Shown here piece by piece: positions 4,448 through 44,962 of a DNA stretch of 64,000 bases. Position 1 is the stretch's first letter. Each line of letters starts with the position of its first letter. Position numbers and translations under genes: made by a program. Source of the stretch: Hydrolagus colliei (taxonomy: Eukaryota); the NCBI GenBank assembly GCA_035084275.1, contig CM068771.1, forward strand, positions 992,001-1,056,000, read 5' to 3'. Under the pieces are notes generated by a model. The model saw nothing but the letters and a program-made list of their open reading frames with translations. It was not told where the DNA came from and did not search any database.

Positions 4448-7400
4448 CTGTAATTAAACTGTAATCAGTGAATCACAGGCCAATGTGATAATTGTCATTG
4501 GTATTAAACATACAGGAAGAGATCAAGTTATTGAATGACACTGAGCTGATCGTTTGGGTGGCTGACACACACAGTCACTGTGATCAGCCACATGGCTAAC
4601 ACATACAGAAAAAAAAACCATGGCTATGATCAGCCGTCTGATACACACGGAAACCCATAATAATAATAATAATCCTCACATTCATATAGCGCTTTTCGCA
4701 TCTCGAAGCAGTTCACAGAATAAACTGTAAAGTAAATTGACTGTACAGGTGTGAGCACAATGCAGCAGCCAACTGCACACAGCAGTTTCTCACAAACAGT
4801 CATGGATTAAAAATAACCATAAAAATTATAATTTATTATTTTTTTGGAGGGATTATTATTAAGTGTGTGGAGTAAGGAAACTTGCCCAAGGTTTCACCCT
4901 GACCTGCCTGGATTCGAACACCGGTCTCATGCTTGTAAGGCGAGTGCTCTAACCACTGACCATGATCAACCTGGTGACCTCCCCTCTGTTTTTTTTGATA
5001 ACTATTTTGTCCTTAGGTTACCGACCCACTCGCCAATGGAAATAATTTCTCCGTTTTCAACCCATCGAATACCCTTTTATTAAGTCTCCTCTTAAACTTC
5101 TCTGCTCCAAGGGGAATAATTTTAGCTTCTCCAGCCTCACCTGATAACTGCCATTGATCATTCTTGGTACCATCGTAGTGCGGTGCCCAAAACTGAACAC
5201 CACTAGCTGAGGCCTAACCAGTGTTTTATAAAGTTGTTTTTAACACAAACAACTCAAATTTATATGGCGCCTTCCCTGCCAGGTTGAGCCAGGGTGACCG
5301 TAAGTGTGATCGAAGCAAAAGGTCTTCAAGCGTGACCTGAAGATTGGAAAAGGATGCGGTGAGGCAAAGGAGTTGCAGAGTTATAGGGCACAATGGCTGA
5401 AAGCACGGCCGTTGATGTATGATTCGGGGGACGAGGAGGCCGGACCCAGTAGAGTGGAGGCAGTGGGTGCTGCCGTCAGGAGAGAGGACGTTACAGAGGT
5501 TGGGGTGTGCAGAGGAGCGAAGGGATTTAAACACAAGAGTGAGGATCTTGAATTGGATCCACTCTGTGACAGGGAGCCAGTGCAATTTGGCAAGAACTGG
5601 AGTAATCTAGTGTAAAGTTTTGTGTGAGTGAGAATGTGGACGGCAGAGTTTTGTAGGAACTGAATCTTGTAGATGGTGGAGGAGGGGAGACCGGCGAGGA
5701 GGGAGTTAGAGTAATCCAGCCGAGAGGTGACAAAGGGAATGGACCAGGGTTTCAGCAGCTGTTGGGGTGAGGGATTGGCAGGGATGGGCAATGTAGTGGA
5801 CATGGAAGACATGGTGGACAGTGCTGGTGAGTGACCGGACGTGGGGGAGGAAGGATAATTGGGGATCTAACCTGATGCCAAAGTTGCGCACAAGTGTTTT
5901 TTAAGGGCAGGATTTAATGATGAGGGTTATGGATTTCATCAAAGTTACAATAAAATTCTGTTGAGCTAACTTAAAACATGTTTTTTGCGAGCTTTCCGTA
6001 TAAATCAAAGAAGGAGGGAATATACTAACAGGGTCAGCCTAGGTCACAGATTGTAAAATAAATGTTTGATTGACTGAAGCTTCCCAATTTGCTTTAGTTT
6101 CAATAGCAATTGGTAGAATATGTCATTGTGGAAGACCCCATTAGTGAAGTTACACCTAGTTATAGGGACTTGCAATGATCAGGGAGATTGAACAGAGGCC
6201 ACCCAGTGCACTGCAATGGAGAGCGAGCCATATCATGGGTGTACATGTGAGGGTGGTACAGTCAAGCGATCTGAGACGCCGTCCGGCGTGGAGGGCGCTA
6301 TATAAATCCAAGTTGCTGTTGTGGTTGATAGAACCGTCTCACCGTCTAAGCTTCACTCTCATCACTTCCCGATCTCAGGAAGGACATCCCCAGGTAGTGG
6401 GGGATTCCATTCCCCCAATGGCTCTATCGCAGCCCAGTCCCGATCCTCACAGTGGGTTAGTGACTGGCAATCATGAGAGGTTATGTGGCTCTGATCAGCT
6501 CTTACCTGTGGTTCATCATTGGATAATTGGCTGCTTTCTTCATCTGTAACCAGAGAGAGAAAATACCTGTATGTTATTGGTTTGCAGCAGTGGTTCCCAA
6601 CTCTTTTTTGCTGTGACCCAAATTAGCCACCAACAGGTCCTCACAACCCTTAGGGGGCGACATTTCAACTGAAGAGCAGCTCAGCCAAGACGATATCCAT
6701 CTAATAATAATAATAATCCTTGCATTTGATATCGCGCTTTTCACATCTTATCGACGTCTCAAAGCGCTTCACAGAATATACTGTAAAGTGAATTGACTGT
6801 ATATTTGTGGGCGAATCGCGGCAGCCAATTGCGCACAGCAGTGTCCCACAAACAGTTGTGGATTGAAATGACCAATTTTATTATTGTGTTTTTTTTTGAG
6901 GGATTATTATTAGGCGTGTGGAGTAAGGAAACTTGCCCAAGGTTTCGCCCTGACCTGCCTGGATTCGAACACAGGTCTCCCCAGCTTGGTCTCCCCAGCC
7001 TGCAAGACAAGTACTCTCACCACTAAGCCACAGGAGGTCCATCTGTTTTGTGGACTCAGTGCAACTCGCTAGTACGATCTCTGATACAAATTGGTTGGCG
7101 GTGTCGCCTCGGGCACTTTTTAGCATTAAAAAAAGCAACAACAACAATTTCTGATGACCCTTCGCGGCCCGACTGAGGACCTCCGCGATCCTGATTTGGG
7201 TCGGGACCCGCGGTTGGGAACCACTGGTTTACAACCATTTAGGAACATTATAGAGTCAGACAGACAGTCAGTCAGTCAGTCAGTCAGTCAAACAGAAACT
7301 GTTTGTACACTATAGAGTTTCATGAGCATAGAACATTATGCGCACGCGTCCGGTTATAGAGTGTAAACTGACACCGTGTTCAGCCTCACTGTTGTTCACT

Positions 7401-10400: not shown

Positions 10401-13400
10401 AGAAAGAAGCCAGTCTCCTTGGCTCCATCAACATTTTCTCCTCAATGGTTAGAACCATTTCCTCAGTTCTGACCTCTTCAACCTCCCCGGCCTTTCCCTA
10501 AGACTTACAATCTGGGCATCAGGTTTGCCCCTCAGCTGTCCTTCCTCCCTCACATCTGTTCCCTGACCAGGACCACCTTCTTCCACCTCATTGCCCACCC
10601 GCACTGTACCTCACATGCAACAGACCCCAAACCATGCAGTTGTCACCTCCCACCTCAACTATTCCAATGCTCTCATAGAATCATAGAATCTTACGGCACA
10701 AAATGAGGCCATTCGGCCCATCTGGTCTGTGCCGGCTCTTTGAAAAGAGCAACTCAATCCCACTGCCCAGCTCTCTCCCCATAACCTAACAGACCTGTTC
10801 TCCCTAAATGAAGATTGAATTCTCTTTTAAAAGCTGTTATCAAATCAGCTTCTACCACCTTTTCAGGCAATGTATTCCTGATTCAAACTATTTTAAAACT
10901 GTGACAAGAGTCACAGATTCGCCCACCAGTAGAAACAGTTTTTCCTTATTCACCCTGTCGAATCCCCTCATGATTTTATAAACCTGTATTAGGTCTCCTC
11001 TCAACCTTATTTGTCCTAGAGAGAATAAACCTAGCCTATCTAGCCTTTCCTCATAACTGAAGTCCCTCAATCCTGGTACCATTCTTTGTACCCTTCCAAT
11101 GCCTTAACATCCTTTCTGTAGTATGGTGACCAGAATTGAACACCAGCTGAGGCCTAACCAAAGTTTTATAGAGGTTAGTCAGCACTTCCTGACTTTTGTA
11201 TTCTATACCCCTATTTATAAAGCCTAGTATCCCATATGCCTTCTTAACAGCCTTGTCTACCTGACCTACCACTTTCAAAGAGTCACTAACACAAATCCCC
11301 AGGTCTCTCTGTTCCTTCACACCCTTCACACACTCTCCTCACCTATCCCCCCAATCCCACTATCCACCAAATCTAATTTATCCAGAACACTACTGCATGT
11401 CTCCACACCCGCTCTACACTCTGTACTCCATCATCTCAGTCCTCACCAGGCTCCACTGGCTCCCCATCAGAGTTCATCCTTTGTGGAGTCCTGTCGCTCG
11501 GTGGTTAGAGCACCTGCCTTACAAGTGAGAGACTTGAGTTCAATCCCAGGCAGGGTGAAACCTTAGGCAGATTTCTTTACTCCATACACCTAATAATAAT
11601 AATCCCTCAAAAACAATTTGGTCATTTCAATCCACGACTGTTTGTAGGCCACTGCTGTATGCAATTGGCTGCTGTGTTTTGTCCACATATGCACAGTCAA
11701 TTCACTACAGCTTATTCAGTAAAGCGCTTTGAGACGTCTGTAAGACCTAAAAAGTGCTGTATCAAATGCAAAGATTATTATTATTATGAACTAATGCACT
11801 TTAAGATCCTCACACTCATCTACAGATCTCTGGCCACACCTTAGCTTCCCAAAGTTTCCTACTCCTCACTCCACCACTCTCCCCAACCATTCAGCTGGCT
11901 CAGTCCTCCTGTTTGTCCCTCGTCCCCTCCGCACCACCTTTGGTGGCTGTGCTGCCAAACTCTATGCTCTGATATGATATGATGAGCTTACGCCCTTCAC
12001 CTTGTCCCCACACCTGGAGACCTTCCTCTTTGACCATGTTGATATTCACCTCCCCCTAGTGTCCCGTATAGGGGGAGGTGATATATGGGACACTAGGGGG
12101 CGTGTCAGCTGCCCGGAGTCAGGTTGCTGTGTAAACCAGGAGTTGTCTTTGTTGATCTTACCCCACGGCACCTCCATCGCCCCCTGGAGGCTGCTGTGCT
12201 CCACCAGACAGGAGAAGCCTTGCCCCTCCATGGAGCCCGTCTCCAGCTCCATCTGATTCGTTATCTGAAAGGTGCCATCGTGGTTGGGTAATACACCACT
12301 GGACACCACCTCGTGGACAGTGTTGCCGTCCCTTGTCCAGGTCACATCGATGGGCCGCGGATAGAAGCCAGTGACAAGACAGGAGAGAAGGTCTCTCCCC
12401 GCCAGGTCCCTCCTGTAACTGACTGAGACGTCAGGGCGGCCTGGGGAGGGGAGCACAGTCACACACAGCTCAGCACTGAGTCCACCCCGACACAGCGAGG
12501 CTTAGCAATGTGATGAGGTTAGATTAGTAACAACCCACACACTCACTCTGTCTCTGGAAGGTGGATCTTGAAAACTGATAGAATTCATCTATCCAATCGG
12601 AACAATTATCTTCCAGCTGCTGTTTGCACATCTGATTGAACTCTTTTTCATTGTTCAGTTTCTGTCTGAGCATCTGAGCCTCGGGGACAGCAGAAATCCA
12701 TCTCAGCTCGTTTATATCAAAGCTGATAAAATCTTTACCTCCGCCCGCAACCGTGATGTATCCGTCAGTTCTTCCATCCTCCATCACCTCACAGCCGGCA
12801 ACCACCTGGGCAAAGTGAACACCTGAAACAGCCCAGAGTNNNNNNNNNNNNNNNNNNNNNNNNNNNNNNNNNNNNNNNNNNNNNNNNNNNNNNNNNNNNN
12901 NNNNNNNNNNNNNNNNNNNNNNNNNNNNNNNNNNNNNNNNNNNNNNNNNNNNNNNNNNNNNNNNNNNNNNNNNNNNNNNNNNNNNNNNNNNNNNNNNNNN
13001 NNNNNNNNNNNNNNNNNNNNNNNNNNNNNNNNNNNNNNNNNNNNNNNNATACACGGATTCATTCACACATTACACTGACAGATAATTCAACATAGACATA
13101 ACACCAACAACAACAACTATGATTTATACAGCAGCCTCTGTGCTGGACGGCGTCTCAGAGGCTTCACAGTAATGGATCCCGGGGGCCGAGCCAGGGGCAG
13201 GGGGGGGAAAGGTGACCGAAGGCACGGTTGGTCGAAGAGAAAGGTCTTCAGCTGGGACCTGAAACTGGGAAGAGAGAGAGGGGGCGAGGGGAAGGGAGTG
13301 AGGAAGGGAGTTCCAGAGCCTCGGGGGGTAGTGGCTGAAGGCACGGCCGCCGAGGGTGGAGCGGAAGCTTTGGGGGACATGGATTCATGTCTGTGTTACT

Positions 13401-13751
13401 CTTCAGCTATTGACAAACCGACTGATACGCACGCGCACACACACTCACAGTGCGGGATATTTACAGGCAATATTAAAACACTCACCACTCGTAATGTTCA
13501 TCCCCGTGATCGTTTCTCTCATATTCTTCTTGATTACATGGTAAAACATCGTCACCCTCGCTACTTTTATGGTGAAGCGCTGTTCATCAATAGCCTGCTG
13601 GACACTCGCGATCCGGCTGTACAGGCTCCGCTCGTTGTCAAACCGAACGATTTCCACATCGTCCACCATCAGAGCAACGAGAAACTCTGGAAAATCACTA
13701 TCTCCTGTCATCATCGTTTGTAGCCATTTGAACGAGCGAGGCTCTGTCAGA

Positions 13752-13786
<35 letters not shown>

Positions 13787-14752
13787 ATTGTACATGTGTA
13801 ACGGGTCACTGGGCACACGCGCTGAACACACACTGCCCACATGCAGCAATGACACACACACAGTGGACACACACACAGTGTACACACACCTCACACTGTA
13901 CACACAGCTCACAGTGTACACACACCTCACAGTGTACACAGCTCACAGTGAACACACAGCTCACACTGTACACACACAGCTCACATTATACACAGCTCAG
14001 TGCACACACAGCTTACAGTGTACACACACAGCTCACAGTATACACAGCTCAGTGCACACAGTTCACAGTATACACAGCTCAGTGCACACACAGCTTACAG
14101 TGTACACACACAGCTCACAGTATACACAGCTCAGTGCACACACAGCTCACAGTGTACACACACACCTCACAGTATACACAGCCCAGTGTGCACACAGCTC
14201 ACAGTATACACAGCTCAGTGTACATACAGCTCAGTGTACACACAGCTCACACTGTACACACAGCCCACAGTGTACACACAGCTCACAGTATACACACAGC
14301 GCAGTGTACACACAGCTCACGGTGTACAATTGGCTACCCTGTTTCACCCACAATCATACAGTCACTTCACTTTACGGTATATTCTGTGAAGCGCTTTGGG
14401 ACGTCGATAAGATGCCAAAAGCCGCGGTATCAAACGCAAGGATTATTATTATTATGATTATTATTATTACACACGGGGCGGGGAGTGGGGGGGGAGAGCA
14501 ATCTCACAGGGTTACGACGGACTGAGTAAAGGAACCCAGGTTCAATATCCGGGCCCCTCCGGTAAACCCCTCCATTATCAGCCCCCTCTCCCTCACCTCT
14601 CCGAGCTTCCCCAGCCTGAGAGAGAGAGAGAGAGAGAGAGATAGAGACCAAATAAGACCAAACAGTAACGGTCAGCGTACGTGCGGCCACTTACTGTGGA
14701 GCCCACTGCACACGGGCAGGAGGACAACCAGAGCCCACAGAGACCTCACCAT
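4407..14752 (-). CDS. Non-classical MHC class I heavy chain, 7 coding exons: join(14752-14695,13743-13486,12822-12547,12440-12162,8406-8296,7436-7404,4447-4407), 1056 nt = 351 aa + stop
   Basis: All introns are GT-AG and phase 1, as in MHC class I genes. Exon sizes are 58/258/276/279/111/33/41. Leader, alpha1 with N86 glycosylation site (NIT), alpha2 with C101-C164, alpha3 Ig-C1 ([29 protein letters not shown]), TM and cytoplasmic tail are all in one open frame. The cytoplasmic exon choice is the least certain part. Confidence 0.9.
5230..5890 (-). mobile_element. L2-clade LINE ORF2 C-terminal fragment (second family)
   Basis: [38 protein letters not shown]; related copies at about 1315-1860(-), 13095-13375(-), 22045-22715(+), 36750-37460(-), 50695-51075(+). 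Confidence 0.85.
6703..7050 (-). mobile_element. tRNA-derived SINE with L2-like tail ending in (ATT)n; representative of a very abundant family
   Basis: Family head tagctcagtggttagagc...ggttcgaatcc (Pol III A/B boxes) and a shared body; further copies at about 4660-4970(-), 9690-10010(+), 11485-11790(+), 17885-18144(-), 19660-19910(-), 21225-21610(+), 28280-28720(+), 30480-30870(+), 33205-33640 (inverted pair), 35420-35655(-), 36085-36415(+), 42970-43215(-), 43255-43565(-), 44680-44915(-), 48125-48440(+). Confidence 0.9.
7404..7436 (-). CDS. MHC class I exon 6 (33-nt cytoplasmic exon, [11 protein letters not shown])
   Basis: Acceptor ttcatag|, strong donor |gtaagtg, 33 nt and phase 1-1 like class I exon 6; paralogous to exons at 4447 and 19565. 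Confidence 0.65.
8296..8406 (-). CDS. MHC class I exon 5 (connecting peptide, transmembrane helix, basic stop-transfer)
   Basis: Acceptor tctgaacag|, donor G|gtgcgg, 111 nt; [37 protein letters not shown]; homologous exon at 20169-20294. Confidence 0.85.
8487..8629 (-). mobile_element. Penelope-like terminal repeat fragment with a minimal hammerhead-like motif
   Basis: ccgacgaagtgtcgtggacccgaaacgttgac followed by the shark-type ...ctccatagatgctgcctgagctgctgagtgtt...ccagca tail. Confidence 0.65.
9522..9657 (+). mobile_element. Penelope-like terminal repeat fragment with a minimal hammerhead-like motif
   Basis: ctgacgaagggtcgtggacctgaaacattgac; inverted relative to 8487-8629. Confidence 0.65.
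10673..11330 (-). mobile_element. CR1 LINE 3' end inside MHC intron 4 (sense orientation)
   Basis: [36 protein letters not shown] and an (ATTCTATG)-type 3' tail. Confidence 0.92.
12162..12440 (-). CDS. MHC class I exon 4 (alpha3 Ig-C1 domain)
   Basis: Acceptor ccccag|, donor G|gtaaga, 279 nt; Ig-C1 cysteines and Trp are intact. Confidence 0.95.
12547..12822 (-). CDS. MHC class I exon 3 (alpha2 domain)
   Basis: Acceptor tttcag|, donor A|gtgagt, canonical 276 nt; H93, Q96, C101, D122, W133, C164, W167 are present. Confidence 0.95.
12840..13048. other. Assembly gap (N run) in MHC intron 2
   Basis: Run of N. Confidence 1.
13486..13743 (-). CDS. MHC class I exon 2 (alpha1 domain)
   Basis: Acceptor ctgacag|, donor G|gtgagt, 258 nt; motifs [19 protein letters not shown] and MNITSG. 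Confidence 0.93.
13850..14330. repeat. CA-rich minisatellite (acagctcacagtgtacacac-like) in MHC intron 1
   Basis: Degenerate 18-22-bp tandem units. Confidence 0.9.
14695..14752 (-). CDS. MHC class I exon 1 (signal peptide [19 protein letters not shown])
   Basis: ATG at 14752, hydrophobic leader, phase-1 donor A|gtaagt. Confidence 0.85.
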
Positions 14753-14759
14753 CCCAGCG

Positions 14760-14930
14760 GCCCGGTCACTGCCGATCACTGAGATTGGCTCAGCTGTGGG
14801 GCCCTCCATCTGACTGACTCTCTCCGCGGCTGATCTCACGCTGACTCACTCGCAGCTCACGGGAAACGCTTGGGAAACGCTCGCTGTGTGTCTCCGGGTA
14901 AAAGGCTCTGAGGTCGTGGTTTTATCGCCT
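14760..14930 (-). promoter_or_regulatory. Putative CpG-rich promoter of the MHC class I gene
   Basis: CpG-dense; CCAAT about 35 nt upstream of the ATG, a TGAGTCA AP-1-like site near 14845, a direct repeat GCGTTTCCC x2 near 14860-14882 and a TATA-like GATAAAA at 14926-14920. The spacing does not match a canonical SXY module. Confidence 0.35.
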
Positions 14931-15209
14931 GCTCTGTGTTGCTGCCTGCGTCGCTCTCTCTCTCTCTCTCTGTGCGCGTGTGTGTGTCTCTGTGTGTGTG
15001 TGTGTGTGCGTGTGTGTGTGTGTCAGCCACAGAGAGCCCGACGCGGAGACACACTGACACACTCACAGAGAGATAACTACAGAGGCACACACAGAGAGAG
15101 AGGCTGACACACACACACACACACAGACACACACACAGACACACAGACAGGCAGAGTCTGACACACCCACAGAGAGACTGACAGCCACAGATTGACACCC
15201 ACAGAGAAC

Positions 15210-15250
<41 letters not shown>

Positions 15251-15327
15251 GACTGATACACACAACAACAACAACAACAACAACATGACATTGACACTGT
15301 GTCTTTCAGGTTGGGAGGACGTCCCAA

Positions 15328-15821
15328 NNNNNNNNNNNNNNNNNNNNNNNNNNNNNNNNNNNNNNNNNNNNNNNNNNNNNNNNNNNNNNNNNNNNNNNNN
15401 NNNNNNNNNNNNNNNNNNNNNNNNNNNNNNNNNNNNNNNNNNNNNNNNNNNNNNNNNNNNNNNNNNNNNNNNNNNNNNNNNNNNNNNNNNNNNNNNNNNN
15501 NNNNNNNNNNNNNNNNNNNNNNNNNNNNNNNNNNNNNNNNNNNNNNNNNNNNNNNNNNNNNNNNNNNNNNNNNNNNNNNNNNNNNNNNNNNNNNNNNNNN
15601 NNNNNNNNNNNNNNNNNNNNNNNNNNNNNNNNNNNNNNNNNNNNNNNNNNNNNNNNNNNNNNNNNNNNNNNNNNNNNNNNNNNNNNNNNNNNNNNNNNNN
15701 NNNNNNNNNNNNNNNNNNNNNNNNNNNNNNNNNNNNNNNNNNNNNNNNNNNNNNNNNNNNNNNNNNNNNNNNNNNNNNNNNNNNNNNNNNNNNNNNNNNN
15801 NNNNNNNNNNNNNNNNNNNNN
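15328..15821. other. Assembly gap (N run) upstream of the MHC gene
   Basis: Run of N. Confidence 1.
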
Positions 15822-17210: not shown

Positions 17211-18142
17211 AGAGGAGGGGAGCGAGCACAGAGCCGTGAGGGACGCCACATGTGACAGAGCGGGGGCTGGAGGAGAAGCCGTTGGCGGCAGGCGGTGGGA
17301 TTAGAACCAGGCAATGACAAGACCGCGGAGATGGAGATGGAGATGGAGAGAGGAGGGAGAGAAGGGTAGATGGGCAATGGTGTGGAGATGGTGTGGGGGG
17401 TGGGGGTGGTGGGTGAAGAGCTGTGACTGATCAGGGAATGTGGACGTTTTGCTGTCAGGAACCTCCTTCCGAATCACTTCCGAATGAGATTGGCCCCCTC
17501 CCCTCCCCCTCCCTCCGTCACTCCCTCTCACACCCCTCTAACTCACACCGCTTTCCCCATTCACACTCCTCCCCCTCCCCTTCGCCCCCCTCAAAACCCT
17601 TCTCCCTCCTCCCCTCTCAAACCCCTCCCTCCTCAAACTGCACCCCTTCATACCCCTCCACTTCTCTCCCTAGGCAGTGTGAGGTAAGGTCGGAGGGGTC
17701 GTATAAGGTGGGAAGGGGGGGTGTGGGAGAGGGGTGTGTAAGGTGGGTGTAAAGTGGAAGAGAAGATGTATGTTGGAAGGGTGGGGTGTAATGTGAGAGG
17801 GGTGTGTGTAAGGTGAGAGGGGGAGGTGTAAGGTGGGGAGGCGGGGGGGGTGTAAGGTGGGAGGGTGGGTGTAAAGTACAAGTGTTTAATAATAATAATA
17901 ATAATCCTTGCATTTGATATAGCGCTTTTCGCATCTTATCGACGTCCCAAAGCGCTTCACAGAATATATTGTAAATGTGACTGTATATATTTGTGGGCGA
18001 TCGCGGCAGCCAATTGCGCACAGCAGTGTCCCCCACAAACAGCTGTGGATTGAAATGACCAATTTTATTATTGTGGTTTTTTGGGATGGATTATTATTAG
18101 GCTTGTGTGTGGAGTAAGGAAACTTGCCCGAGGTTTCGCCCT

Positions 18143-18184: not shown

Positions 18185-18269
18185 TACAGTCTACAGTTAA
18201 AATGTGCGTTCTTCAAATCCACTGCATCTTGTTCTGAATGGACTGTGTAACTTAACTAATGTTTCTGTA

Positions 18270-19012
18270 ATGTGGTGGGGGGGCGGGGTATAAGGTGGGA
18301 GGGTGGAGTGTAAGGTGCGAGAGTTACTGTAAGGTGGGGGTGGTGTAAGGTTGGAGTTGGATGTGTAAGGTGCGAGGGGATGTAAGCTGTGGGGGGGTGT
18401 AAGGTGGGCAGTGGGTGGGTGTAAGGTGGGAGGAGGTGGTGTAAAGTTGGAGGGCGGCAGTTGTAAAGTGGGAGAGGGGGGTGTGTGTGTTTAAGGTGGG
18501 CGGGGGGTGTGTGTGTGTAAGGTGGGCAGGGGGTGTGTGTGTAAGGTGGGAGGGGGGTGTGTGTGTGTAAGATGGGAGAGGGGGGTGTGTGTAAGGTGGG
18601 AGAGGGGGGTGTGTGTAAGGTGGGCGGGGGTGTGTGTGTGTAAGGTGGGTGGGGGTGTGTGTGTAAGGTGGGAGAGTGGGGTGTGTGTAAGGTGGGCAGG
18701 GGCTGTGTGTGTAAGGTGGGAGTGAGGATGTGTGTGTGAGGTGGGAGGGGGGTGCGTGTGTGTAAGGTGGGAGAGGGGGTGTGTGTGTAAGGTGGGAGAT
18801 GGGGTGTGTGTGTGTAAGGTGGGAGAGGGGGTGTGTGTAAGGGGTGTGTGTAAGGTGGGAGAAGGTGTGTGTGTGTGTAAGGTGGGCAGGGGGTGTGTGT
18901 GTGTAAGGTAGGCAGGGGGTGTGTGTGTGTGTGTAAGGTGGGAGTGAGGGTGTGTGTGTGTAAGGTGGGAGAGGGGTGTGTGTGTGTGTGTGTAAGGTGG
19001 GAGAGGGGGGTG
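18270..19012. repeat. G/T-rich minisatellite (gtgtgtgtaaggtgggagaggggg-like), with a related tract at 17690-17880
   Basis: Tandem 22-28-bp units; source of the spurious HTP-rich ORFs. Confidence 0.93.
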
Positions 19013-19520
19013 TAGATTGCGAGTGGTAGTGAGTTTTGCCGAAGCCCAAATATACTCTCTACAAATTGACCCAAAGATCGAAAGCAAATGTCTTTATTTC
19101 TCCCACAAGCAACAGTCTCTGTGTTAACATTGACATGATATTATCACAGTGTTACCAGCATAATAATCACAATGTACAGTATATTGGTATAAAAGTTACA
19201 CTATCGTATAATATAAAACTTACATTTTCTGATAATCTAATATAAAGTTACACTTCCATAATGTGATATAAAGTATAGTGATCGAATATAAAGCGTTATA
19301 ATCCAGTATAAAATATATTAATCTAACATAAAGTGTAATAATCTAATATAAACTATAATACTGAAATCTACATATTGGATCCTTTGCTGTGATGGGCATC
19401 AGTACAGTCAGTGTTCATACATTAGAGTCAGTCACAGAGCGTGTGTGATCACAGAGGTCTGACATACAAGTGAACACACAGTCACACACAGTCACGCAGA
19501 CTCATGTCCATTGGTACATG

Positions 19521-20529: not shown

Positions 20530-23036
20530 TGAGAGCCAAAGAAGTATGGGAGAGAGAGTGGAGTGAGTGAGAGAGAAGAGTCTGAGACAGGGAGAGAGGG
20601 AAAAGAGGGAGAACATAAGAATTTGCAGGCAAAAAAAGACCAAAGTCCATCTAATTCCTGTTGCATCCTGCCAGTTACTTGACATGTTGCGTCCCAGACT
20701 TTATATTGTGTGCGTCTGTCTCTGTGTTTGTGTATCTCTTTTTCTCTCTGCCTGCGTCTGTCTGTGTGTGTGTATCTGTCTCTCTCTCTCTCTGTCTCTC
20801 TGTGTATGGGTTTGTGTGTCTCCCTCTTTCCCTGTGTGTCTCCCTCTGTCTATGTGTGTTTCTATGGGCCCCAGATATAATTCTCCAGCAAAAAATCTCA
20901 TTTATTCTTGAAGCCAACAACATTTTCTGCTTCCTCTGTCTGTCTGTCTTCCGTAAGTTTATTGATCACACACTGAAGTAGTATTTCTGTAGATTCGCTC
21001 TGAAGTCACCCCCTTCCAATTGCAGGCCTTGTCCACTGGCTCTACTGTTCAGTACAAGATAAAGCAGCGTGTCATGGTCTACATTATCTAGTCTGCTTCG
21101 GAAGATGGGAATCATTTCAACCCTCAAACTTCTCTTCTCTAACATGAACATGCCCAGTTCATCTAATCACTCCTCGTACTCCAGTCCCTCGATCCCCTCA
21201 AGCATTTTTGGAGGGGAGGGTTCGGAGTCCTTTAGCTCAGTGGTTAGAGTACTCGCCTGACAACCGAGAGATCTCGGTTCGATTCCCAGCAGGTTGGGCA
21301 GGTTTCTTTACTCCGCACACTTGCTAATAAACCCTCAACAAAAATACAACATAATTCCGTCACTCATTACACGGCTGATCGTGGGACACTGATGTGCGCA
21401 ATTGGCTGCTGCGTTTCAACAACAACAACAACAATTTACATTTATAGAGCACCTTTCACGTCGGGAGGACGTCCCAAGGCGCTTCACCCACAAAATATAC
21501 AGTCAATTCACTTTGCAGTATATTCCTTGAAGCGCTTTGAGATGCCTAGAAGCCGTGAGAGGCGCTGTATCAAATACAAGGATTATTATTATTATTATTA
21601 TTATTACAGTTGCCCTCCTTCGCAACACAAACGTACGTTTGTTGTTGTATCTCCTCAATGTCTGCAATATCCTCTTTGTGTTGAGGAGACTAGAACACAC
21701 ACAGAGAGGAGTCTGAGAAAGGGAGAGAGTGCTGCACATGCCTCTCACATTTTACGCGCCCCCCCCCCACCACCCACCCCCCCACCACCCACCCCCCCAC
21801 CACCCACCCCCCCACCACCCACCCCCCCACCACCCACCCCCCCACCACCCACCCCCCCACCACCCACCCCCCCACCACCCACCCCCCCACCACCAACCCC
21901 CCCACCACCAACCCCCCCACCACCAACCCCCCCACCCACCAACCCCCCCACCACCAACCCCCCCACCACCAACCCCCCCACCACCAACCCCCCCACCCAC
22001 CAACCCCCCCACCACCAACCCCCCCACCACCAACCCACCCCAGTGCTCGGAGACGCTGCCTCGTGGCTGCACCCTCCACAACTGGTCCTTCACCAGCCCC
22101 GCCTTCTTCTATCTACACCATTTTGCCCAAAAGCTGCCAAAGCCTTGCTCCATGCCTTTTGTCACCTCTCGCCTGGACTGCTCCCAACACCTTCCTCGCA
22201 GGTCTCCCCTCCGCTACCGTTCGGAAAAGGCATCTCATACAGAACTCCACAGCTCACATTCTCACCAGAACCAAACTGAACTCCCTGATTATCCCAGCCC
22301 TCGCCAGACATCACAGGCTCCCTGTCACAGAGAGGATCAACTTCAAGATCTTCACTCTTGGATTTAAATGCCTCCACTCCTCTATATGCCCCCTACCTCA
22401 CTAACCTCCTCTCTCTCCTCACAGCTGCCTCCACTCGACTGCCTCTGGCCTCCTCCTTGTCGCCCGAATCTTCCGTTCCACCATCGGTGACCGTGCCTTC
22501 AGCCGCTACTCCCCGAAACTCCGGATCTCCCTCCCTCAATCCCCCCCGCTTCGCCTCCTACTTTTCCATTTTCGGGTCGCGCCTGAAGACCTTTCTGTTT
22601 GACCGCGTCCACAGTCACCTTCCCCCTCCCCTCGGCTCGGCCCCGGGGTCCGCTATTGTGAGGTGCTCTGTGACGCCGTCTGTCTCGGAGGGCACTGTAT
22701 CAATGCAATATATTCAGGTTTCTGGATAAACAGGAGTTATCATTGTTGATCTTACCCCACGGCTCCTCCATCGCCCCCTGGAGGCTGCTGTGCTCCACGC
22801 AACTGGAGAAGCCTTTCCCCTCCATTGGAGAGCCGTCTCCAAGTCCATCTGCTTCGTTATCTGAAAGGTGCCATCGTGGTTGGGTAATACACCACTGGAC
22901 ACCACCTCGTGGACAGTGTTGCCGTCCCTTGTCCAGGTCACCTCGATGGGCCGCGGATGGAAGCCAGTGACAAGACAGGAGAGAAGGTCTCTCCCCGCCA
23001 GGTCCCTCCTGTCACTGCCTGAGACGTCAGGGCGGC
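19521..23036 (-). pseudogene. 5'-truncated MHC class I pseudogene: alpha3 exon 23036-22756 (frameshifted), TM exon 20294-20169, cytoplasmic exon starting at 19565
   Basis: The alpha3 exon is 281 nt versus 279 nt (+2 frameshift after DLET) and its second Ig cysteine codon is mutated (TGT to AGT). The 33-nt cytoplasmic exon has lost its GT donor. Homology to the intact gene stops about 60 nt upstream of the alpha3 acceptor, and no leader, alpha1 or alpha2 copy is seen. Confidence 0.85.
21759..22040. repeat. 15-bp C-rich minisatellite (ccccccaccacccac / ccccccaccaccaac)
   Basis: About 18 tandem units in two sequence variants. Confidence 0.95.
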
Positions 23037-35785: not shown

Positions 35786-38169
35786 AGGCAGTGACAGCAG
35801 CTCAGAACCTCATTGGATCCCAATCTCAGAATCTCATTAACTCACCTAATATAACTGTATTCTCACTTACAATGATGCCTCTCTTAAAATAGTCTCATCA
35901 GAGCTTAACTGACCCCAAGGAGCCAATGGAATGTGGGTATTGAGCATGTCTCTACGATGGTCTTTAGTCCAATTCCTGACCTAGGTGGGTCCGCAGTATT
36001 CCAGGGCTCTCACGGCTGATATCAATGACAAGTTATGTGGATTTAGCTGGTTGGACTCTGGCTGTTACCCCCAATACATGTGGAGCTCCTGTGGCTCAGT
36101 GGTTAGAGCACTTGTCTTGCAAGCTGGGGAAACCAAGCTAGGGAGACCTGTGTTCGAATCCAGGCAGGTCAGGGCCAAACCTTGGGCAAGTTTCCTTACT
36201 CCACACGCCTAATAATAATCACTCCAAAAAAACACAATAATAAAATTGGTCATTTTAATCCACGACTGTGTGTGGGACACTGCTGTGCGCAATTGGCTGC
36301 CGCGATTCGCCCACAAATATATAGTCAATTCACATTACAGTATATTCTGTGAAGCGCTTTGGATAAGATATGGAAAGCGCCATATCAAATGCAAGGATTA
36401 TTATATTATTATTATTACACATTCTGGACTCCCCCAAAGCCTTGGCTCTCTGTGTAAACACTTTCCTGAATTAGGTAAGAAGGATGTGTCCCTCCAGAGC
36501 ATTACATTCCAATAATCTATCTCTGGAATTTCCATGTGTAGACAGGATGTTGGGGAAATCTCGGCTTGAAGCTTCAGAGTCTCCAAAATAATAATACTAA
36601 TAATCTGTCCATTTGATACAGGTGCCATTTCATGTCTTTGGCACTTCTCAAAGCACCAAACTTGCCAGATTCAAATCCCGAGCAGGCCGAAACCTGAGGC
36701 AAGCTTCCTTACTCCACACATATGTCACTGTTTTCGTAGCAGTAAGTAGGAATACACTTGCAACAACAACATCTTGGAGTTATATAGTGCCCTCCATGCT
36801 GGACAGTGTCTCAGAGCACTTCCCATTAATGGATCCTTGGGCCGAGGCAGGGGGAGGGGGAAGAAGGTGACTGTAAGTGTGGTCGAAAGAAAGATCTTTA
36901 GCCGAGACCTGAAAGTAGGAAGAGGCAAAAGGAGTGAGGAAGGGAGTTCTAGAGCCTCAGGGCATAGTGGCTGAAGGTATGGCCACCGATGGTGGAGCGG
37001 AGGATTCGGGGGACAAGGAGGAGGGCAGACCCGGTGGAGTGAAGGCAACGGGTACTATTGTGAGGAGAGAGGTCAGAGAGAGGTAGCGGGTGCAGAGGAG
37101 TGGAGGAATTAGAAAACATGGGTGAGGATCTTGAAATCGATCCTCTCCAGACAGAGAGCCAGTGAAGTCTGGCAAGGACTGGGGTAATCAGTGAGCGGAG
37201 TTTGGTATGGGTAAGAATGTGGACGGCAGAATTCTGGAAGAAACTGGATTTTGTGAATGTTGGTGGAGGGGAGACCGTGAGGAGGGCATTTAAACAGTCC
37301 AGCTGAGAGCTGACAAGAGCATGGAACAGGGTTTAGGCGGCTTCTGGGGTGAGATATCGGCGGAGACGGGCGATGCATCAGAGATGGAAGAAACCAGTGC
37401 TGGTGAGGGACCAGATGTGGGGGAGGAAGGATAATTAGGGGTCGAACCTGATGCCTAGGTTGTTAGTCAATTGGTGGATCCCTTTCTGGGGTAATAATCC
37501 CTTCAAAAAATGAAAAATGAGTGCTACTTAATCCACGACTGTTTGTGGGACACTGCTGTAAGCAAATGGATAGCGCGTTTTACCACAAAATATATATATT
37601 ATATCCTGTGACGCACTTTGAAATGACATAACAAAATGGTGAGGCATTATAACAATTGCAATAATTATTATTGTATATTGAGCACCCACCATCTGCTAAC
37701 AACCAACCCTTCCTTCAGCGGCCAGTTTAAAAGATAAAAGGATTAAGGGATGTGGAGTTAGGGCAGGTAAGTGGAATTAGGTTAGAAGATCACCCATGAT
37801 CTTTCTAAATGCTGGGGCAGGCTCGAGGGGCTGAATGGTCTACTCCTGCTCTTATTTCTTATGTTCTCATGTTGGCTGAGTTGAAGACGTGTTTGATTGT
37901 GTCGGGATGGACGGGAGCCATAAGATCCAAAGTGCGCTATGTGCATTGTAGTTGCTGGGATGTAGCTTTGCAAACACTCGGTGTTTCTAATCCCCTTTTT
38001 AGTGATAACCATTCTCTAAAAAGTTTTGTAGTTGTGCTCAGTAAGGGCTGAGTTGATAGGTAAAGCTTACAGGATGGAGCTGAACAGCTTCTCTGACTGA
38101 TTATGTGGGAGGAACTGCACCGACATTGAAACTGAAAGAAGTTTTGAATCAGAAACTGCTGAGGGTGAA

Positions 38170-39109: not shown

Positions 39110-40570
39110 ATCTTTTGACCGATTGACCTGGTTATCACCCGGGGCCTCATCACTGTGGATGTCACCATCACTGACAAAGCCATCTCAGGCCACCACTTCA
39201 TTTCCCTTAATACCTCCACACCCCTTCCCCCTGCTCAATCCTCCAATAATACCTACACCTGTAGAAAACTATCTCCCCCCACCTCCCTCTCTGCCACCTT
39301 CGAGTCGTCTGACCTCCTACCCCTCTGGCCCTCTCTAAATAACTAACCCTCCTCTCTAGCCTTCCTCATCAGTTCCCTCTCCTCCATCCTCGACTCCCTT
39401 GCTCCCCTCACCACCTGAACTGCATCCTATTCCCGTAAATCCCCCTTGTACACTAGCCACCTCTTAACCCTTAGGGTGCAACTGCAAACTGCCGAACGCA
39501 CCTGGACCAAATCAAAATTAACAGGCCACTGGCGAATTTAGCGAGATCACACCAAGGCCTACCCCTCCGCCCTAGCCACCGCCAACTCCTCATATTACTC
39601 CAAATTAATCGTGGAGGTGAAGGTCAATCCCAGGCTCCTTTTCTCCACCAGGAACTGCCTCCTCCGCCCACCCTCTCACGCCTCACATACCCTATCCTCC
39701 AACTCCAAATGTGAAGAGATGCTGGACTTCCTCAAAAATCGAGAGGATCTGTTCAGCCACCTCCACCCCATCCTCCATTAATATTTATATGGTTGAGTCA
39801 TTAGATTTCCTTGTTGTAAACTCCGGGAAACCACTTTTTGGTTTCTTCTTCTGTAGGGTGTGAGCAGATACCAGAGGGGAAGTAACTAATGTGATCAAAA
39901 TTAGTAAGTTACTTTTGAGCATTTTAACCAATCGATGTGGTAGAAACCAGATAAGAAGCTGAACTGAGGCCACAACAGTGGTGAGGGTCCCTCTGCCTCC
40001 TTGTCCTCTTGTATCTCTTCTGTATTTGACACAGGGGAGCATGCTATCTCTTCTTCCCTCATCCAACTTAGTGGGACTGCGCTTGCCTGGTTTGAATCAT
40101 ACTTAAGTCAACTGTCTCCACTTCATCTCAGCAAATGGTTTTTCATCCTGCTCCTCCCTGGTCATCTGTGTGGTACCCCAGTGCTTCACTCTTGGCCCTG
40201 TTCTTTTCCTCATTTATATGCGATTGATTGATGGATTGATGGATTGATTGTCAAAGTCATCCGCAGACACGGGGTAAACTTCCATATGTATGCAAATCTG
40301 CTTTACCACTTCCAGTATCAACTCCAGGTCTGCCGATGTTCTATCCACTTGTCTTGCAGACATCAGGGCCTTGATGATTGCAAACTTCCAACAGCTGAAT
40401 GTGGACAAGATGGAAGCCATAGTACTTGGCTCCCATCAATGACTTCACAATCTGTAGATCTAAATACCTCAACCTTCTCGGGCTCTCTCTCAGATTCACT
40501 GATCCAGTGCCCAATCTCGGTGCCCGATTCGACATCTGGTCTCTGACCTACTTTCACCTCCACCACATTG
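39110..40570 (+). mobile_element. Degenerate L2 ORF2 (endonuclease end and RT), internally deleted
   Basis: LDLVITRGL..ITDKAISGHHFISL, IRRHGVNFHMYA, NFQQLNVDK motifs. Confidence 0.75.
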
Positions 40571-42680
40571 CATACTCTAGCATGCACACACACTTGTGTG
40601 CATAAACTGCATACACACTCACTCACACGTAAAATCTCACTCACAAACACACACTCTCAGGTGTGCACAAAGACTCTCTCAGGTTGCACAAACACACTCT
40701 CATCAATGCACACACATGCAAACACACATTCTTGCATGTATACACAATCTCACACACAAACCCTTGTGCACATGCTCTTGTACATATATCCTCTGGCACA
40801 CATATTCACACTCACTGGTACACACACTCCCTCTCATGCACACACACACACACACACTCACTCACAGTCACTCAAATACATGCACATTCTTGCATGCACA
40901 CTCTTGGTCACACACTGTTGCTCGTGACCCCTCTAGTAGAAACACTCTCAAACTCTAGTACACAGATGCTCTTGTTTGCACACACATGCACATGTACACT
41001 GCATGCACACTCTCTCACACAAGCATTCACAAATGCATATTCTCACATACAATCACACTCACACACTTGCTAGGGTGCGCAAACACATGCTCTCATATCC
41101 ATGCACACTTGTGAACACACACTGATGTGTGCACACACTCTCACACAAACCCCCCAAAAAATTTGTGCACATACTCTCTTGCATACACATCCACTCACTT
41201 GCATGCAGGCACATTCTCTCTCACACAAACACAGTCACTCATGCACACGTGCATTCTGAAATGCATGCACAGTGTTGCAAATACAAACACTTGCATGCAT
41301 ACACACATGCTTGTTCACAAACACACATGTCTCAGGTGTGCACACACATACTCTCTCTGCACATTTGCAAACACACAGTCTTGTATGCGCGCATACTCTC
41401 TCTCACACCCAATGCACATTCTCACATACCTGCACACTCTCGTACACATTCACTCATGCTCATACACATACTTTTACACACTCTTGCACACACTCTAGTA
41501 CACTCTCACACACACTATTTTGTGCACACACTCTTGTGCACAGTCTCAATCTCTAATACACTCTTTCATTCACACACATTCTCTCCCTCTCAAGTATAGT
41601 CACTGTCATCCATGCAGACTCTCACATGCATGCACAATCTCACACATACACACACATATGCATACACACACATGCTCTCAAATGAAAATTCTCTCAGATG
41701 TGCGCCTAAACACTCACATGCAGTCAAACATACACTTGCATACGTACAAGTTCTGGCACACAAAACCCCTCACACACATTCACACAAATACAAAAACACT
41801 CTTGTGAGTACACACGGATATGCTCACACTCTCACACTGTCACACACACACATGCTCATTCTCACATACATGCACACTACATACACAGGCACACTAGCAC
41901 ACTTGCCTGTGCAAACTCACTCACACACAACCTCAAACACATGCACTTTCACACCCAAACCCATGCACACACGCTCACATGCACACACTTGCACACACAT
42001 ACTCATTTGCACACACTCTCTTGCATGGGCACACATGCACACATTCACACATTCATGTGTGCACGCATTCTCACAAACACCCATGCACACACACACTTGT
42101 GCACACACACATTTATATACACACACTCATTCACATTTGTTCAAAAGCACACACACTCGTGCATGCACTTAGACTTCAAGCACACACACTTTTGCAGACA
42201 CGCTCTTATGTCCGCACATACTCACACATACACTACCTTGCACAAAAACAGTTATACACACACTGCTGCACAATGTCCCTTGCACACATGCTCACACCCT
42301 CTAGTGCACACACTCTTGCACACACATTCGCACACACATTTTTGCACTGCTGAAGCTTGCACGTACACAATTTGTGCACACACATACACACATAGTTGCG
42401 TGCACAAGCATACAGTTGCACAAACACCTGCTCACACACACTTGCTCATATTATGTGTCTCACGAGCACACACTCTGTCATATGCGTGCTCACCCTCAGG
42501 TGTGCACATGATACCCGTGAATGCACAATCACTCACACCACACATACACTCATGAATGCCTGCACTGACTCTTTCATGCAAGAGCACTCTCACATGCATT
42601 CATTCACACACTCTCTTACACACAAAGTCTTACACACTCGCACATACACCCAAGAATAAACACACACACGTGCACACTCA
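40570..42680. repeat. Long degenerate (CA)n-derived low-complexity tract; related tract at 44080-44660
   Basis: Continuous cacacact/tgcaca motifs; source of the HT-rich ORFs. Confidence 0.9.
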
Positions 42681-44962
42681 CACTCGATGTGGACTTATAT
42701 TGGCTGGGAGCACTGCATAGTCTGATACTGACTGTGAGTAAGTATGTTTCTGATGTTTTGTACCTGTAGCTGGTGTTCAGTGGTTGTGTGTGTACTGTAC
42801 GTGTGTCCCTGTGTGAGTCTGTGTTTGTGAGTGAGAAACCAGAAACACTCTCCCGCACTAGGCTCTGTGATGCTATCATAGCCATTCTCGCCTGACTCCA
42901 CTGGCTTCCCATCATTCAGCGGATTCAATTCCAGATCCTGATCTTCAGCTTGAAAGCCCTCCATGACCTCGCTCACACTTCAGAGTACAGTATAGTAAAA
43001 TGAATTGACTGTATATTTGTGGGTGAAATTGCACACTGCAGCGTCCCACAAACAGTCGTGGATTGAAATGACCAATTTTTATTATTTTTTGTTGGATGGA
43101 TTATTAGGCACGTGGAGTAAGGAAACTTACCCAAGGTTTCGCCCTGACCTGCCTGGATTTGAACACAGATATCGTGCTTGTGAGGCGAGTGCTCTAACCA
43201 CTGAGCTGCAGGACTTCACAACCTTTCAGGAAATAATAAAATGATAAAAACGTAATAAGCCTTGCATTTGATATAGCGCTTTTCACATCTTATCGACGTC
43301 TCAAAGCGCTTCGCAGAATATACTGTAAAGTGAAGTGACTGTATACAGTATTTGTGTGCAAAATGTGGCAGCCAATTGTGCACAGCAGTGTCCCACAAGC
43401 AGTCGTGGATTGAAATGACCACTTTTATTAATGTGTTTTTGTTTGGAGGGATTATTATTAGGCGCATGTTTGTGGAGTAATGAAACTTGCCTAAGGTTTG
43501 GCCCTGATCTGCTTGGATTCAAACACAGGTCTCATAAGGCGAGTGCTTTAACCACTGAGCTGCATAAATGAATTAGTGGCCTCACTGGAATTTGAGATTA
43601 TAACTCCGTTTATGGAACCCAAAGTCCAAAATACAACAAACTCATACCCCATCCCCACCCACCCCACCCCACCGCCACGCACCCTGAACCTTAGGCTTCA
43701 CCAAGTACAGTACAGTACTAAGTACAGTATCTCTGATAGGGGTCATAATCTTAATATTAAGGGTCAGCCTTTTGGAACAGAGTTGAGGAAATATTTTTTC
43801 TCTCAGAGGGTAGTGAATTTAGAAGGCTGTAGATGCTCATTCCTTGAACATTTTCAAGGCTGAGACTGATAGATTTTTTTTTAAAAAGGAGGGGTTAGGG
43901 GATATGGGGATAGGGCAGGTAATTAGAGTTAGGTGAGAAGATCAGCCATGATCTTATCAAATGGTGGGGCAGGCTCGAGGGGCCGAATGGCGTACTCCTG
44001 CTCCTAATTCTTATGTTCTTCAATGCATAATTCCGAATGAATTCCACTATTTGGCCTGTACATAAGCCGCACTCTCCCACACATACTATCTCACGTGCAA
44101 ACACACTCTGGTAAGCATGCACATTCATGCAAACACACACTTAAGTACACACAAACACTCTCACATGCGCACGCACACTCAAGCAAACACACATATGCAC
44201 AAAAAAAGCATGCTTGGACACACACCTACATACACATGTACACTCACTCACGCACACAGACTTGCTCACACACATGCACATTCTAACATGTATACACACT
44301 CTCTCATGCACATACATTCTATCATATGCACACTTGCACTCTCACACAGGTACACTCTCAAACACTTGCACAGTCTTGCACACATGCACACTCACAAACA
44401 CCTAAAGACTCACACACTCTTGTGCACACACTTCCTTACGTGTACACACACTCACATACACACACCAGCATGCACTCACATGGACACTCTCAAGTGTGCA
44501 CAAATGCATACACACTTACACACTCTGATGCACATACAAGGTCCCGCATACACTTTTACATGCTAAAGAATCTTGCACACACTCACAGAGTCACTCACAT
44601 GCACAGACACTTGAAAGCACAAATACTATCAAGTGCATGGATACACTTGTGTGCCCAGACACTCTTTTACACAGAATAGACTGTAAAGTGAATTGACTGC
44701 ATATTTGTGGGTGAAACGCAGCAGCCAATTACACACAGCATGTCCCACCAAACAGTTGTGGAATGAAATGACCAATTGTAATTTTTTTTCGAGGGATTAT
44801 TATTAGGCGCGTGGAATAAGGAAACCTGCCTTAAGGTTTTGCCCTGACCTACCTGGATTTGAACATAGGTCTCATGCTTGTAAGGTGAGTGCTCTAACCA
44901 CTGAGCTACAGGGCTCCCAATATTTTTTAAAAATCACACAATAATGGGACATAGGCCACAGA

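Follow-up and report, generated by a model that had tools for sequence, protein, structure and literature searches.

A divergent class Ib heavy-chain gene of Hydrolagus colliei with a predicted hydrophobic groove

The stretch of Hydrolagus colliei DNA analyzed here (64,000 nucleotides, hereafter the window; GenBank assembly GCA_035084275.1, contig CM068771.1, positions 992,001 to 1,056,000 of the forward strand) contains, on its minus strand, a gene for a class I heavy chain (major histocompatibility complex, MHC) in which the residues that hold peptide ends are almost all replaced and the groove is unusually hydrophobic. The gene very probably belongs to a class Ib family that it shares with paralogs of Callorhinchus milii; this family is known only from holocephalans in the databases searched and is already present in public annotation. 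Judged from the aligned sequences, the window gene is the most divergent member of its clade and has the most hydrophobic groove in it, and its ligand-binding half is the new part. An earlier sequence-only reading of the same DNA had described an intact non-classical class I gene at 12547-13743 as a candidate presenter of lipids or small molecules and had allowed for a new lineage. On our analysis a hydrophobic non-peptide ligand is the most likely one for the predicted protein, a proposal that we make tentatively, and the gene, a member of a family that annotation already covers, appears to be a reasonable choice for ligand studies.

Gene structure and groove residues

On the basis of minus-strand translation and splice signals, the class I gene was resolved into seven open exons, namely a leader exon, one exon each for α1, α2, α3, and the transmembrane segment, and two cytoplasmic exons (Table 1; all positions are those of the window). 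Every exon junction has canonical ag/gt borders; the leader, α1, α2, and α3 exons all end in phase 1, the pattern general for class I genes; and the frame is open across the seven exons to give a protein of 340 residues, or 351 when the cassette exon is included. The spliced protein matches the Pfam families MHC_I (PF00129, 1.9e-18) and C1-set (PF07654, 2.5e-17), both beyond the gathering scores. The succession of MHC_I and C1-set domains, the allotment of one exon to each domain, the phase-1 junctions, the disulfides of α2 and α3, and the transmembrane anchor identify the gene as a member of the MHC class I superfamily. The coordinates given for the intact gene by the sequence-only reading run exactly from the end of the α2 exon to the start of the α1 exon, and the gene was recovered there. 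Intron 2 contains an assembly gap. The 17 readable nucleotides between the gap and the α2 exon include the acceptor tttcag (12828-12823), and the gap takes no coding letters away; because the α1 donor and the α2 acceptor are both phase 1, the frame is kept across the gap. An interspersed repeat, with further copies in the window and in the C. milii locus, matches the readable flank of intron 2 at 13099-13367 and is the likely reason for the assembly break.

Residues were numbered according to HLA-A2 in a MAFFT alignment with shark and skate classical-type proteins, the C. milii relatives, and the other shark lineages. At the eight peptide-terminus positions (7, 59, 84, 143, 146, 147, 159, and 171) the window protein carries W, R, G, L, K, L, Q, and F, the same residues that had been read by manual alignment, and Lys146 alone is kept. 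The corresponding count is eight of eight in the shark/skate UAA-type proteins P0016 and P0053 and seven of eight in P0072; by its anchors the window protein is not a classical, UAA-type class I molecule. Other features are retained: Cys101 and Cys164, Gln96, Asp122, the glycosylation site at Asn86 (NIT), both disulfides, and the α3 motif VLPNHDG. The alignment agrees with the earlier statements that the β2-microglobulin contacts (Gln96, Asp122, and the α3 LPN) and the N86 glycan site are preserved and that the YDG motif of α2 has become GGG, at positions 118-120. With one of the eight anchors left and with the disulfides, Asn86, the β2-microglobulin contacts, and the transmembrane anchor in place, the designation as a non-classical class I heavy chain holds. 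The α2 exon encodes the C101-C164 pair, the GGG, Leu143, Lys146, Leu147, Gln159, Trp167, and Phe171, and also an extra cysteine within the α2-helix sequence NQMCKQQ. This unpaired residue lies near HLA-A2 position 156, faces the groove by alignment, and is shared with C. milii P0003 and with no other paralog.

The sheet floor of the groove is composed almost wholly of small or apolar residues (F5, W7, F22, V24, L26, V34, L45, A95, V97, A99, I114, V116, and G118), with Gln9 and Tyr113 as the polar exceptions. Averaged over 47 groove positions, 31 of them hydrophobic and eight charged, the Kyte-Doolittle hydropathy of the window protein is 1.00. The values for comparison are 0.13 for HLA-A2, -0.37 to 0.34 for the shark/skate UAA-type proteins, -0.25 to 0.72 for a multicopy shark lineage, and 0.04-0.93 for the C. 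milii relatives. Only the elasmobranch lineage X, described below, is higher (1.2-1.6), and among the 51 sequences the window protein is second to it; its groove stands above all of the classical, teleost, and multicopy-shark sequences compared and above its own paralogs. The hydrophobic groove is a real feature and no chance pattern, and the earlier claim to that effect is upheld in relative terms. Seventeen of the 18 floor and wall residues on which that claim drew were reproduced; at position 152 the residue is Glu and not Phe, the numbering there being ambiguous from a nearby one-residue indel in the α2 helix.

Family membership and divergence

In a protein search, 14 C. milii proteins (P0001-P0014) matched at 54-73% identity, after which identity fell sharply to 32-35% for proteins of sharks, rays, and teleosts. 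The closest C. milii class I-like proteins are 64% identical to the window protein overall, a figure that comprises 35-41% in α1, 61-63% in α2, and 85% in α3. The paralogs occur in tandem, with at least three genes on the 49-kb unplaced scaffold MU250313.1. Separate phylogenies of α1α2 and α3, a check that the sequence-only reading had proposed, were built without CD1, PROCR, or MR1 sequences, and both group the window protein with C. milii. In the maximum-likelihood tree of α1α2 it forms with five C. milii proteins a clade of 100/100 support on a long stem, is sister to all five on a long branch of its own, and has a top identity of 53%; the α3 tree recovers the clade with 98/98 support. The suggestion of a possible new lineage was not sustained, since the window gene groups, at 100/100, with a holocephalan family of the public annotation.

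The window gene and its C. milii paralogs have the same exon structure and homologous transmembrane and cytoplasmic exons, and R/H59, L143, K146, and L147 are common among them; the shared derived residues R/H59, L143, and L147 together with the homologous transmembrane and cytoplasmic exons mark the window gene as belonging to the family. The paralogs differ from it in having FDG where the window gene has GGG and in possessing 22-27 hydrophobic groove residues instead of 31, and the α1 domain of the window protein has a one-residue deletion. In the C. milii gene that encodes P0001, the closest public relative, the transmembrane exon (13541-13660 of C. milii locus L001) has in-frame stops just past the hydrophobic stretch, and this copy may be truncated or decaying.

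Divergence from C. milii is strongly mosaic. When window positions 12162-13743 were compared with 10737-12287 of locus L001, nucleotide identity was 66% in α1, 78% in α2, 90% in intron 3, 92.5% in α3, and 73% in the 300 bp downstream. The dS of α3 is only 0.065, and three C. milii α3 exons are mutually identical. The pattern suggests either a conversion or recombination tract over intron 3 and α3 or an old α1α2 sublineage on a homogenized α3. Against the two nearest C. milii genes, α1 has a dS of 0.64-0.73 with a dN/dS of 0.7-0.77, and α2 has a dS of 0.45 with a dN/dS of 0.5. The 178 α1/α2 codons of the window gene contain no stops or frameshifts; a copy that had long been neutral at such dS would be expected, by a rough estimate, to hold several stops in that length. 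Because stops are absent despite a dS of 0.45-0.73, constraint that was at least weak has acted on the gene during most of its past. Between the two C. milii copies, the α1 differences are mostly replacement changes (dN/dS 3.8, few changes), and these replacements together with the weak α1 constraint are compatible with a diversifying ligand site. We take the window gene to be an apparently functional class Ib heavy-chain gene and a divergent member of its multigene family, and we hold the overall explanation, proposed ligand included, to be about as likely as not.

An AlphaFold model was made of C. milii P0001, with a 69-sequence alignment, and not of the window protein. The model (mean pLDDT 85.5, pTM 0.75) combines a platform of eight strands with two helices and an Ig domain, as is usual, and its Foldseek matches include class I molecules of anole and fish; 9CH4 was not among the matches listed. 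The holocephalan family is predicted from this model to fold as an ordinary class I molecule; the cavity of the window protein itself lies outside its scope.

A search seeded with a shark match split the elasmobranch class I-like proteins into three groups. Lineage X (P0018, P0020, and P0121-P0131), found in sharks and rays with a single gene in each species, bears the NCBI name 'MR1-like'. Against the Protein Data Bank (PDB), its member P0125 matches MR1 chains at 1e-59 to 1e-49, clearly better than classical class I (1e-45 and weaker). Lineage Y (P0133-P0137) is from sharks and is 67-72% identical to PDB entry 9CH4. Among solved structures, 9CH4 is also the best match of the window protein (E 1.2e-38; 1429 PDB class I-type matches), and the best solved-structure relatives of the window protein are all class I. 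Lineage M is large, multicopy, and confined to sharks. The maximum-likelihood tree joins the holocephalan family to X+Y with 92/83 support, a grouping that other tests do not back (see below), and nesting within X alone or Y alone is mildly rejected by the approximately unbiased (AU) test (p ~0.03). UDA is reportedly multicopy in a ratfish, which is a lead only and no test of the family name; if this is right, the holocephalan family is presumably the holocephalan 'UDA'. A 2023 survey lists for elasmobranchs UBA, a single-copy UDA, a multicopy UEA, and a CD1-like UFA that is unpublished, notes that elasmobranchs and holocephalans have some class Ib lineages in common, and calls the holocephalans data deficient; its supplement tables label the class Ib genes 'MHC-Ib' only, with no lineage labels (PMC10751288). 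A 2025 review adds UGA and cites, as personal communication, crystal and mass-spectrometry evidence for lipid binding by UFA and UGA (PMC12562908). Lineage M is probably the UEA of the literature (PMC10751288), and lineages X and Y are probably two of the published UDA/UFA/UGA genes.

Candidate ligand and rival explanations

In the mechanism that we propose, the class I chain would pair with β2-microglobulin and reach the cell surface. Because seven of the eight terminus anchors are replaced, the groove would be unable to clamp peptide ends. A hydrophobic non-peptide ligand, either lipid-like or a small apolar metabolite, would instead occupy a deepened central/F-side cavity and would be displayed to a receptor of innate-like T-cell or NK type. 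We favor such a ligand because the floor is apolar and made of small residues and the anchors are replaced, and the residues as aligned are compatible with either a lipid or a small molecule.

An extension of this proposal, which we consider improbable, is that the holocephalan family corresponds to the CD1-like class Ib genes of elasmobranchs, with the window copy as its most lipid-adapted member. If that were true, hydrophobic non-peptide presentation by class I-like molecules would predate the split of chimaeras from sharks and rays, and in chimaeras it would have expanded to a tandem multigene family with diversified grooves. Holocephalans are the least-sampled jawed-vertebrate branch for MHC biology, the ligand-binding exons of the window gene reach no more than 53% identity with any public sequence, and the hydrophobicity of its groove is topped only by the most hydrophobic elasmobranch lineage compared. 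The gene thereby becomes a concrete candidate with which to ask if the presentation of non-peptide ligands goes back as far as the MHC itself.

Several observations weigh against the proposed ligand or its extension. Eight charged helix residues (R59, K63, R66, K76, E80, K146, E150, and E152) line the groove, and an open, deep cavity in the window protein is deduced from aligned residues only. In the Foldseek comparison with the PDB, the P0001 model is nearest to chicken BF2 (TM-score 0.91-0.92), with shark UAA at 0.84 and MR1 at 0.81, and no CD1 occurs in its top 50 fold matches. The part of the cytoplasmic tail that was found, KRKRQR plus 23 residues of which the 11 of the cassette exon are optional, is short and Ser-rich and has no YXX-hydrophobic endosomal motif, the terminal exon being absent from the model; because this part lacks a tyrosine-based motif, CD1-style endosomal sampling gains no support. 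The dN/dS of α1 amounts to weak constraint. The gene model is a prediction from genomic sequence; tblastn with C. milii tails as queries did not recover its terminal exon, in which the stop codon would lie, and the α1 and α2 exons flank the assembly gap, which makes their origin in one copy an assumption of the model. As to the wider placement, the AU test leaves a position of the family with M or with the classical/teleost group unrejected (p 0.13), and the α1α2 profile-profile scores with X (166) and Y (150) are below those with M (187), shark UAA (181), and teleost U (236). Because the AU tests and profile scores do not back the maximum-likelihood grouping with X+Y, we regard the holocephalan family as a separate deep branch for which several sister placements are compatible with the data; the grouping with X+Y may be due to long-branch attraction.

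The strongest rival to a non-peptide ligand, although an unlikely one, is a restricted set of hydrophobic peptides presented non-canonically with unclamped ends, in the manner of HLA-E/Qa-1-type molecules or of those Xenopus class Ib molecules that bind long peptides. Lys146 and Trp167 are kept, the fold of the paralog model is nearest to peptide-binding class I, the charged helix residues could hold a peptide backbone, and the α1 replacements between C. milii copies, though few, are what a diversifying ligand site would be expected to show. The loss of seven of the eight anchors, among them Tyr7, Tyr59, Thr143, Trp147, Tyr159, and Tyr171, argues otherwise, as does a floor that offers no polar pocket residues besides Gln9 and Tyr113.

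We think it improbable that the gene does not work, either as a recently inactivated copy or as an assembly chimaera of an α1 exon with an α2-α3 block from different paralogs. In favor of this stand the gap between α1 and α2, the mosaic rise in nucleotide identity to C. milii from 66% in α1 to 92.5% in α3, the dN/dS of α1, a frameshifted α3 relic 10 kb away, the stops in the transmembrane exon of the nearest C. milii gene, and the terminal exon not found with the C. milii tails. It is opposed by the open frame of all seven exons, whose splice sites are canonical and whose phases match, by the several stops estimated for 178 codons of a long-dead copy at dS 0.45-0.73, by exon order, strand, and spacing as in one gene, and by an upstream block conserved with C. 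milii paralogs. The least likely alternative, that the groove holds no ligand and the molecule's sole role is that of a surface ligand or a partner of a receptor, like MIC, HFE, FcRn, or ZAG-type molecules, fits the loss of canonical anchors, the presence of ZAG among the significant solved relatives (E 2.8e-26), and a multicopy, fast-evolving family but not the well-kept β2-microglobulin contacts and whole α3 domain or a hydrophobic floor that is not packed with large side chains and in which A95, A99, and G118 create space.

Surroundings of the gene and known class I systems

The coordinates of the class I exons, the two assembly gaps, and the other features of the window are collected in Table 1. 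Upstream of the start codon, the block GAGTGAGTCAGCGTGAGATCAG (14851-14830), which has the form GAGTGAGTCAG[C/T]GTGAGATCAG, is conserved with two C. milii paralogs. The element GTTTCCCAAGCGTTTCCC (14878-14861) is IRF/ISRE-like in look and is found only in the window, not being conserved in C. milii, and a CCAAT is present at 14788-14784 on the minus strand, upstream of the ATG. The region 14878-14830 is a possible, putative promoter of the class I gene; any distal promoter or enhancer is unread because of the second assembly gap. Half of intron 1 is repetitive (13751-14328), an (AC)17 run there being succeeded by ~27 units of a 16/52-bp minisatellite. More GA, GT, and AC runs surround the leader exon and extend upstream of it (14618-15264).

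Table 1 Class I exons, assembly gaps, and neighboring features of the window
Feature	Position	Strand	Description
Second assembly gap	15328-15821		~575 bp upstream of the start codon
Upstream region	14878-14830	minus	78-126 nt before the ATG; conserved block and IRF-like motif
Leader exon	14752-14695	minus	ATG at 14752; 19 aa; phase-1 end; donor gtaagt
α1 exon	13743-13486	minus	258 nt; acceptor ctgacag, donor gtgagt; W7, R59, G84, NIT glycan site at 86
Assembly gap (N run)	12840-13048		Within intron 2
α2 exon	12822-12547	minus	276 nt; acceptor tttcag, donor gtgagt
α3 exon	12440-12162	minus	Ig C1-set; 85% aa and 92.5% nt identity to C. milii paralogs
Connecting peptide, transmembrane segment, and start of tail	8406-8296	minus	37 aa; ag/gt, phase 1-1
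Cassette cytoplasmic exon	7436-7404	minus	33 nt, 11 aa; homologous to optional C. milii exon GPGTHQYSRPS; ag/gtaagt
Cytoplasmic exon	6543-6506	minus	38 nt, 12 aa; homologous to C. milii EESGQSSNGQ; ttacag/gtaaga; frame open at end
Lone α3 relic	22757-23034	minus	Frameshift, disturbed second Cys motif; 95% nt identity to the α3 of the gene, 89% to C. milii α3
GPR139-like ORF	45595-46488	minus	Rhodopsin-family, 297 aa; Pfam 7tm_1 9e-18
GPR139-like ORF	54849-55775	minus	Rhodopsin-family, 308 aa; Pfam 7tm_1 1e-21; 71-73% identical to C. milii 'probable GPR139'
Reverse-transcriptase/LINE fragments	567-989, 52193-52537, 61034-62467	minus	RVT_1 matches; strand is that of 61034-62467

The neighbors of the class I gene in the window are two intronless GPR139-like receptor open reading frames (ORFs), retroelement fragments, SINE-like repeats, and the α3-only relic, beside which no α1, α2, or transmembrane exon was found. 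No MHC framework or antigen-processing (TAP/PSMB) genes occur within the 64-kb window, which is a short stretch for linkage. In Heptranchias perlo (JAYJKY010000940.1, 530 kb) a GPR139-like gene lies at ~104 kb and a lineage-X class Ib gene at ~482-506 kb. This pair echoes the one in the window, but it is a weak hint at most, and synteny of GPR139 and class I was rejected as evidence: ~375 kb separates the two Heptranchias genes, and the receptor family, for which cartilaginous fish gave more than 1100 matches, has over 1000 members. The window holds well over a dozen copies of a SINE-like element of ~330 bp (for example at 11482-11787, 6702-6979, 17887-18142, and 36079-36415), which occurs in the C. 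milii locus as well. The CA/TG-rich low-complexity tracts at 18256-19087 and 40568-44679 give rise to spurious His/Thr/Pro-rich ORFs of 120-270 residues on either strand.

Among known systems, classical class I molecules (shark UAA, PDB 6LUP; chicken BF2; HLA-A2) share with the window protein the order of domains, disulfides, N86 glycan, β2-microglobulin contacts, and exon phases; they are set apart by the anchors, of which one of eight remains in the window protein versus all eight in P0016 and P0053. High allelic polymorphism, ubiquitous expression, and tight linkage to TAP/PSMB genes further characterize the classical genes; the window covers one haplotype. MR1, which presents metabolites, is a significant PDB match (E 2e-34 and weaker) and a fold match of the paralog model (TM-score ~0.81), but it scores below the classical class I of fish, chicken, and shark and is not the closest relative. 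Position 45 of HLA-A2, which we take to be equivalent to the ligand-binding lysine of MR1, is Leu in the window protein. CD1 molecules, the lipid-presenting class I-like molecules of amniotes, have deep hydrophobic A'/F' pockets and, in most isoforms, a YXX-hydrophobic endosomal motif in the tail. Any resemblance of the window protein to them would be functional only, through the loss of peptide-end anchors and a small hydrophobic floor, both general properties of CD1. No CD1 chain is present among the best 60 PDB sequence matches or the best 50 fold matches of the paralog model, eight charged helix residues are found in the window protein, and the part of its tail that was found has no YXX-hydrophobic motif; neither sequence, fold, nor tail motif groups it with CD1.

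The elasmobranch lineages X and Y share with the window protein a Leu or Phe instead of Thr at position 143, and an ENDC/EKDC motif is common to them, but they are only 33-35% identical to it. Lineage Y keeps Tyr7, Tyr59, Trp147, and Tyr171, which the window gene lacks. A very hydrophobic groove is found in lineage X, too. The Rfp-Y class I molecule YF1*7.1 of chicken (PDB 3P73; E 1.3e-29) has no special relatedness to the window protein and ranks below many classical chains, yet its groove too is hydrophobic, and because it binds non-peptide ligands it provides a precedent for a classical-looking fold that accommodates hydrophobic non-peptide ligands.

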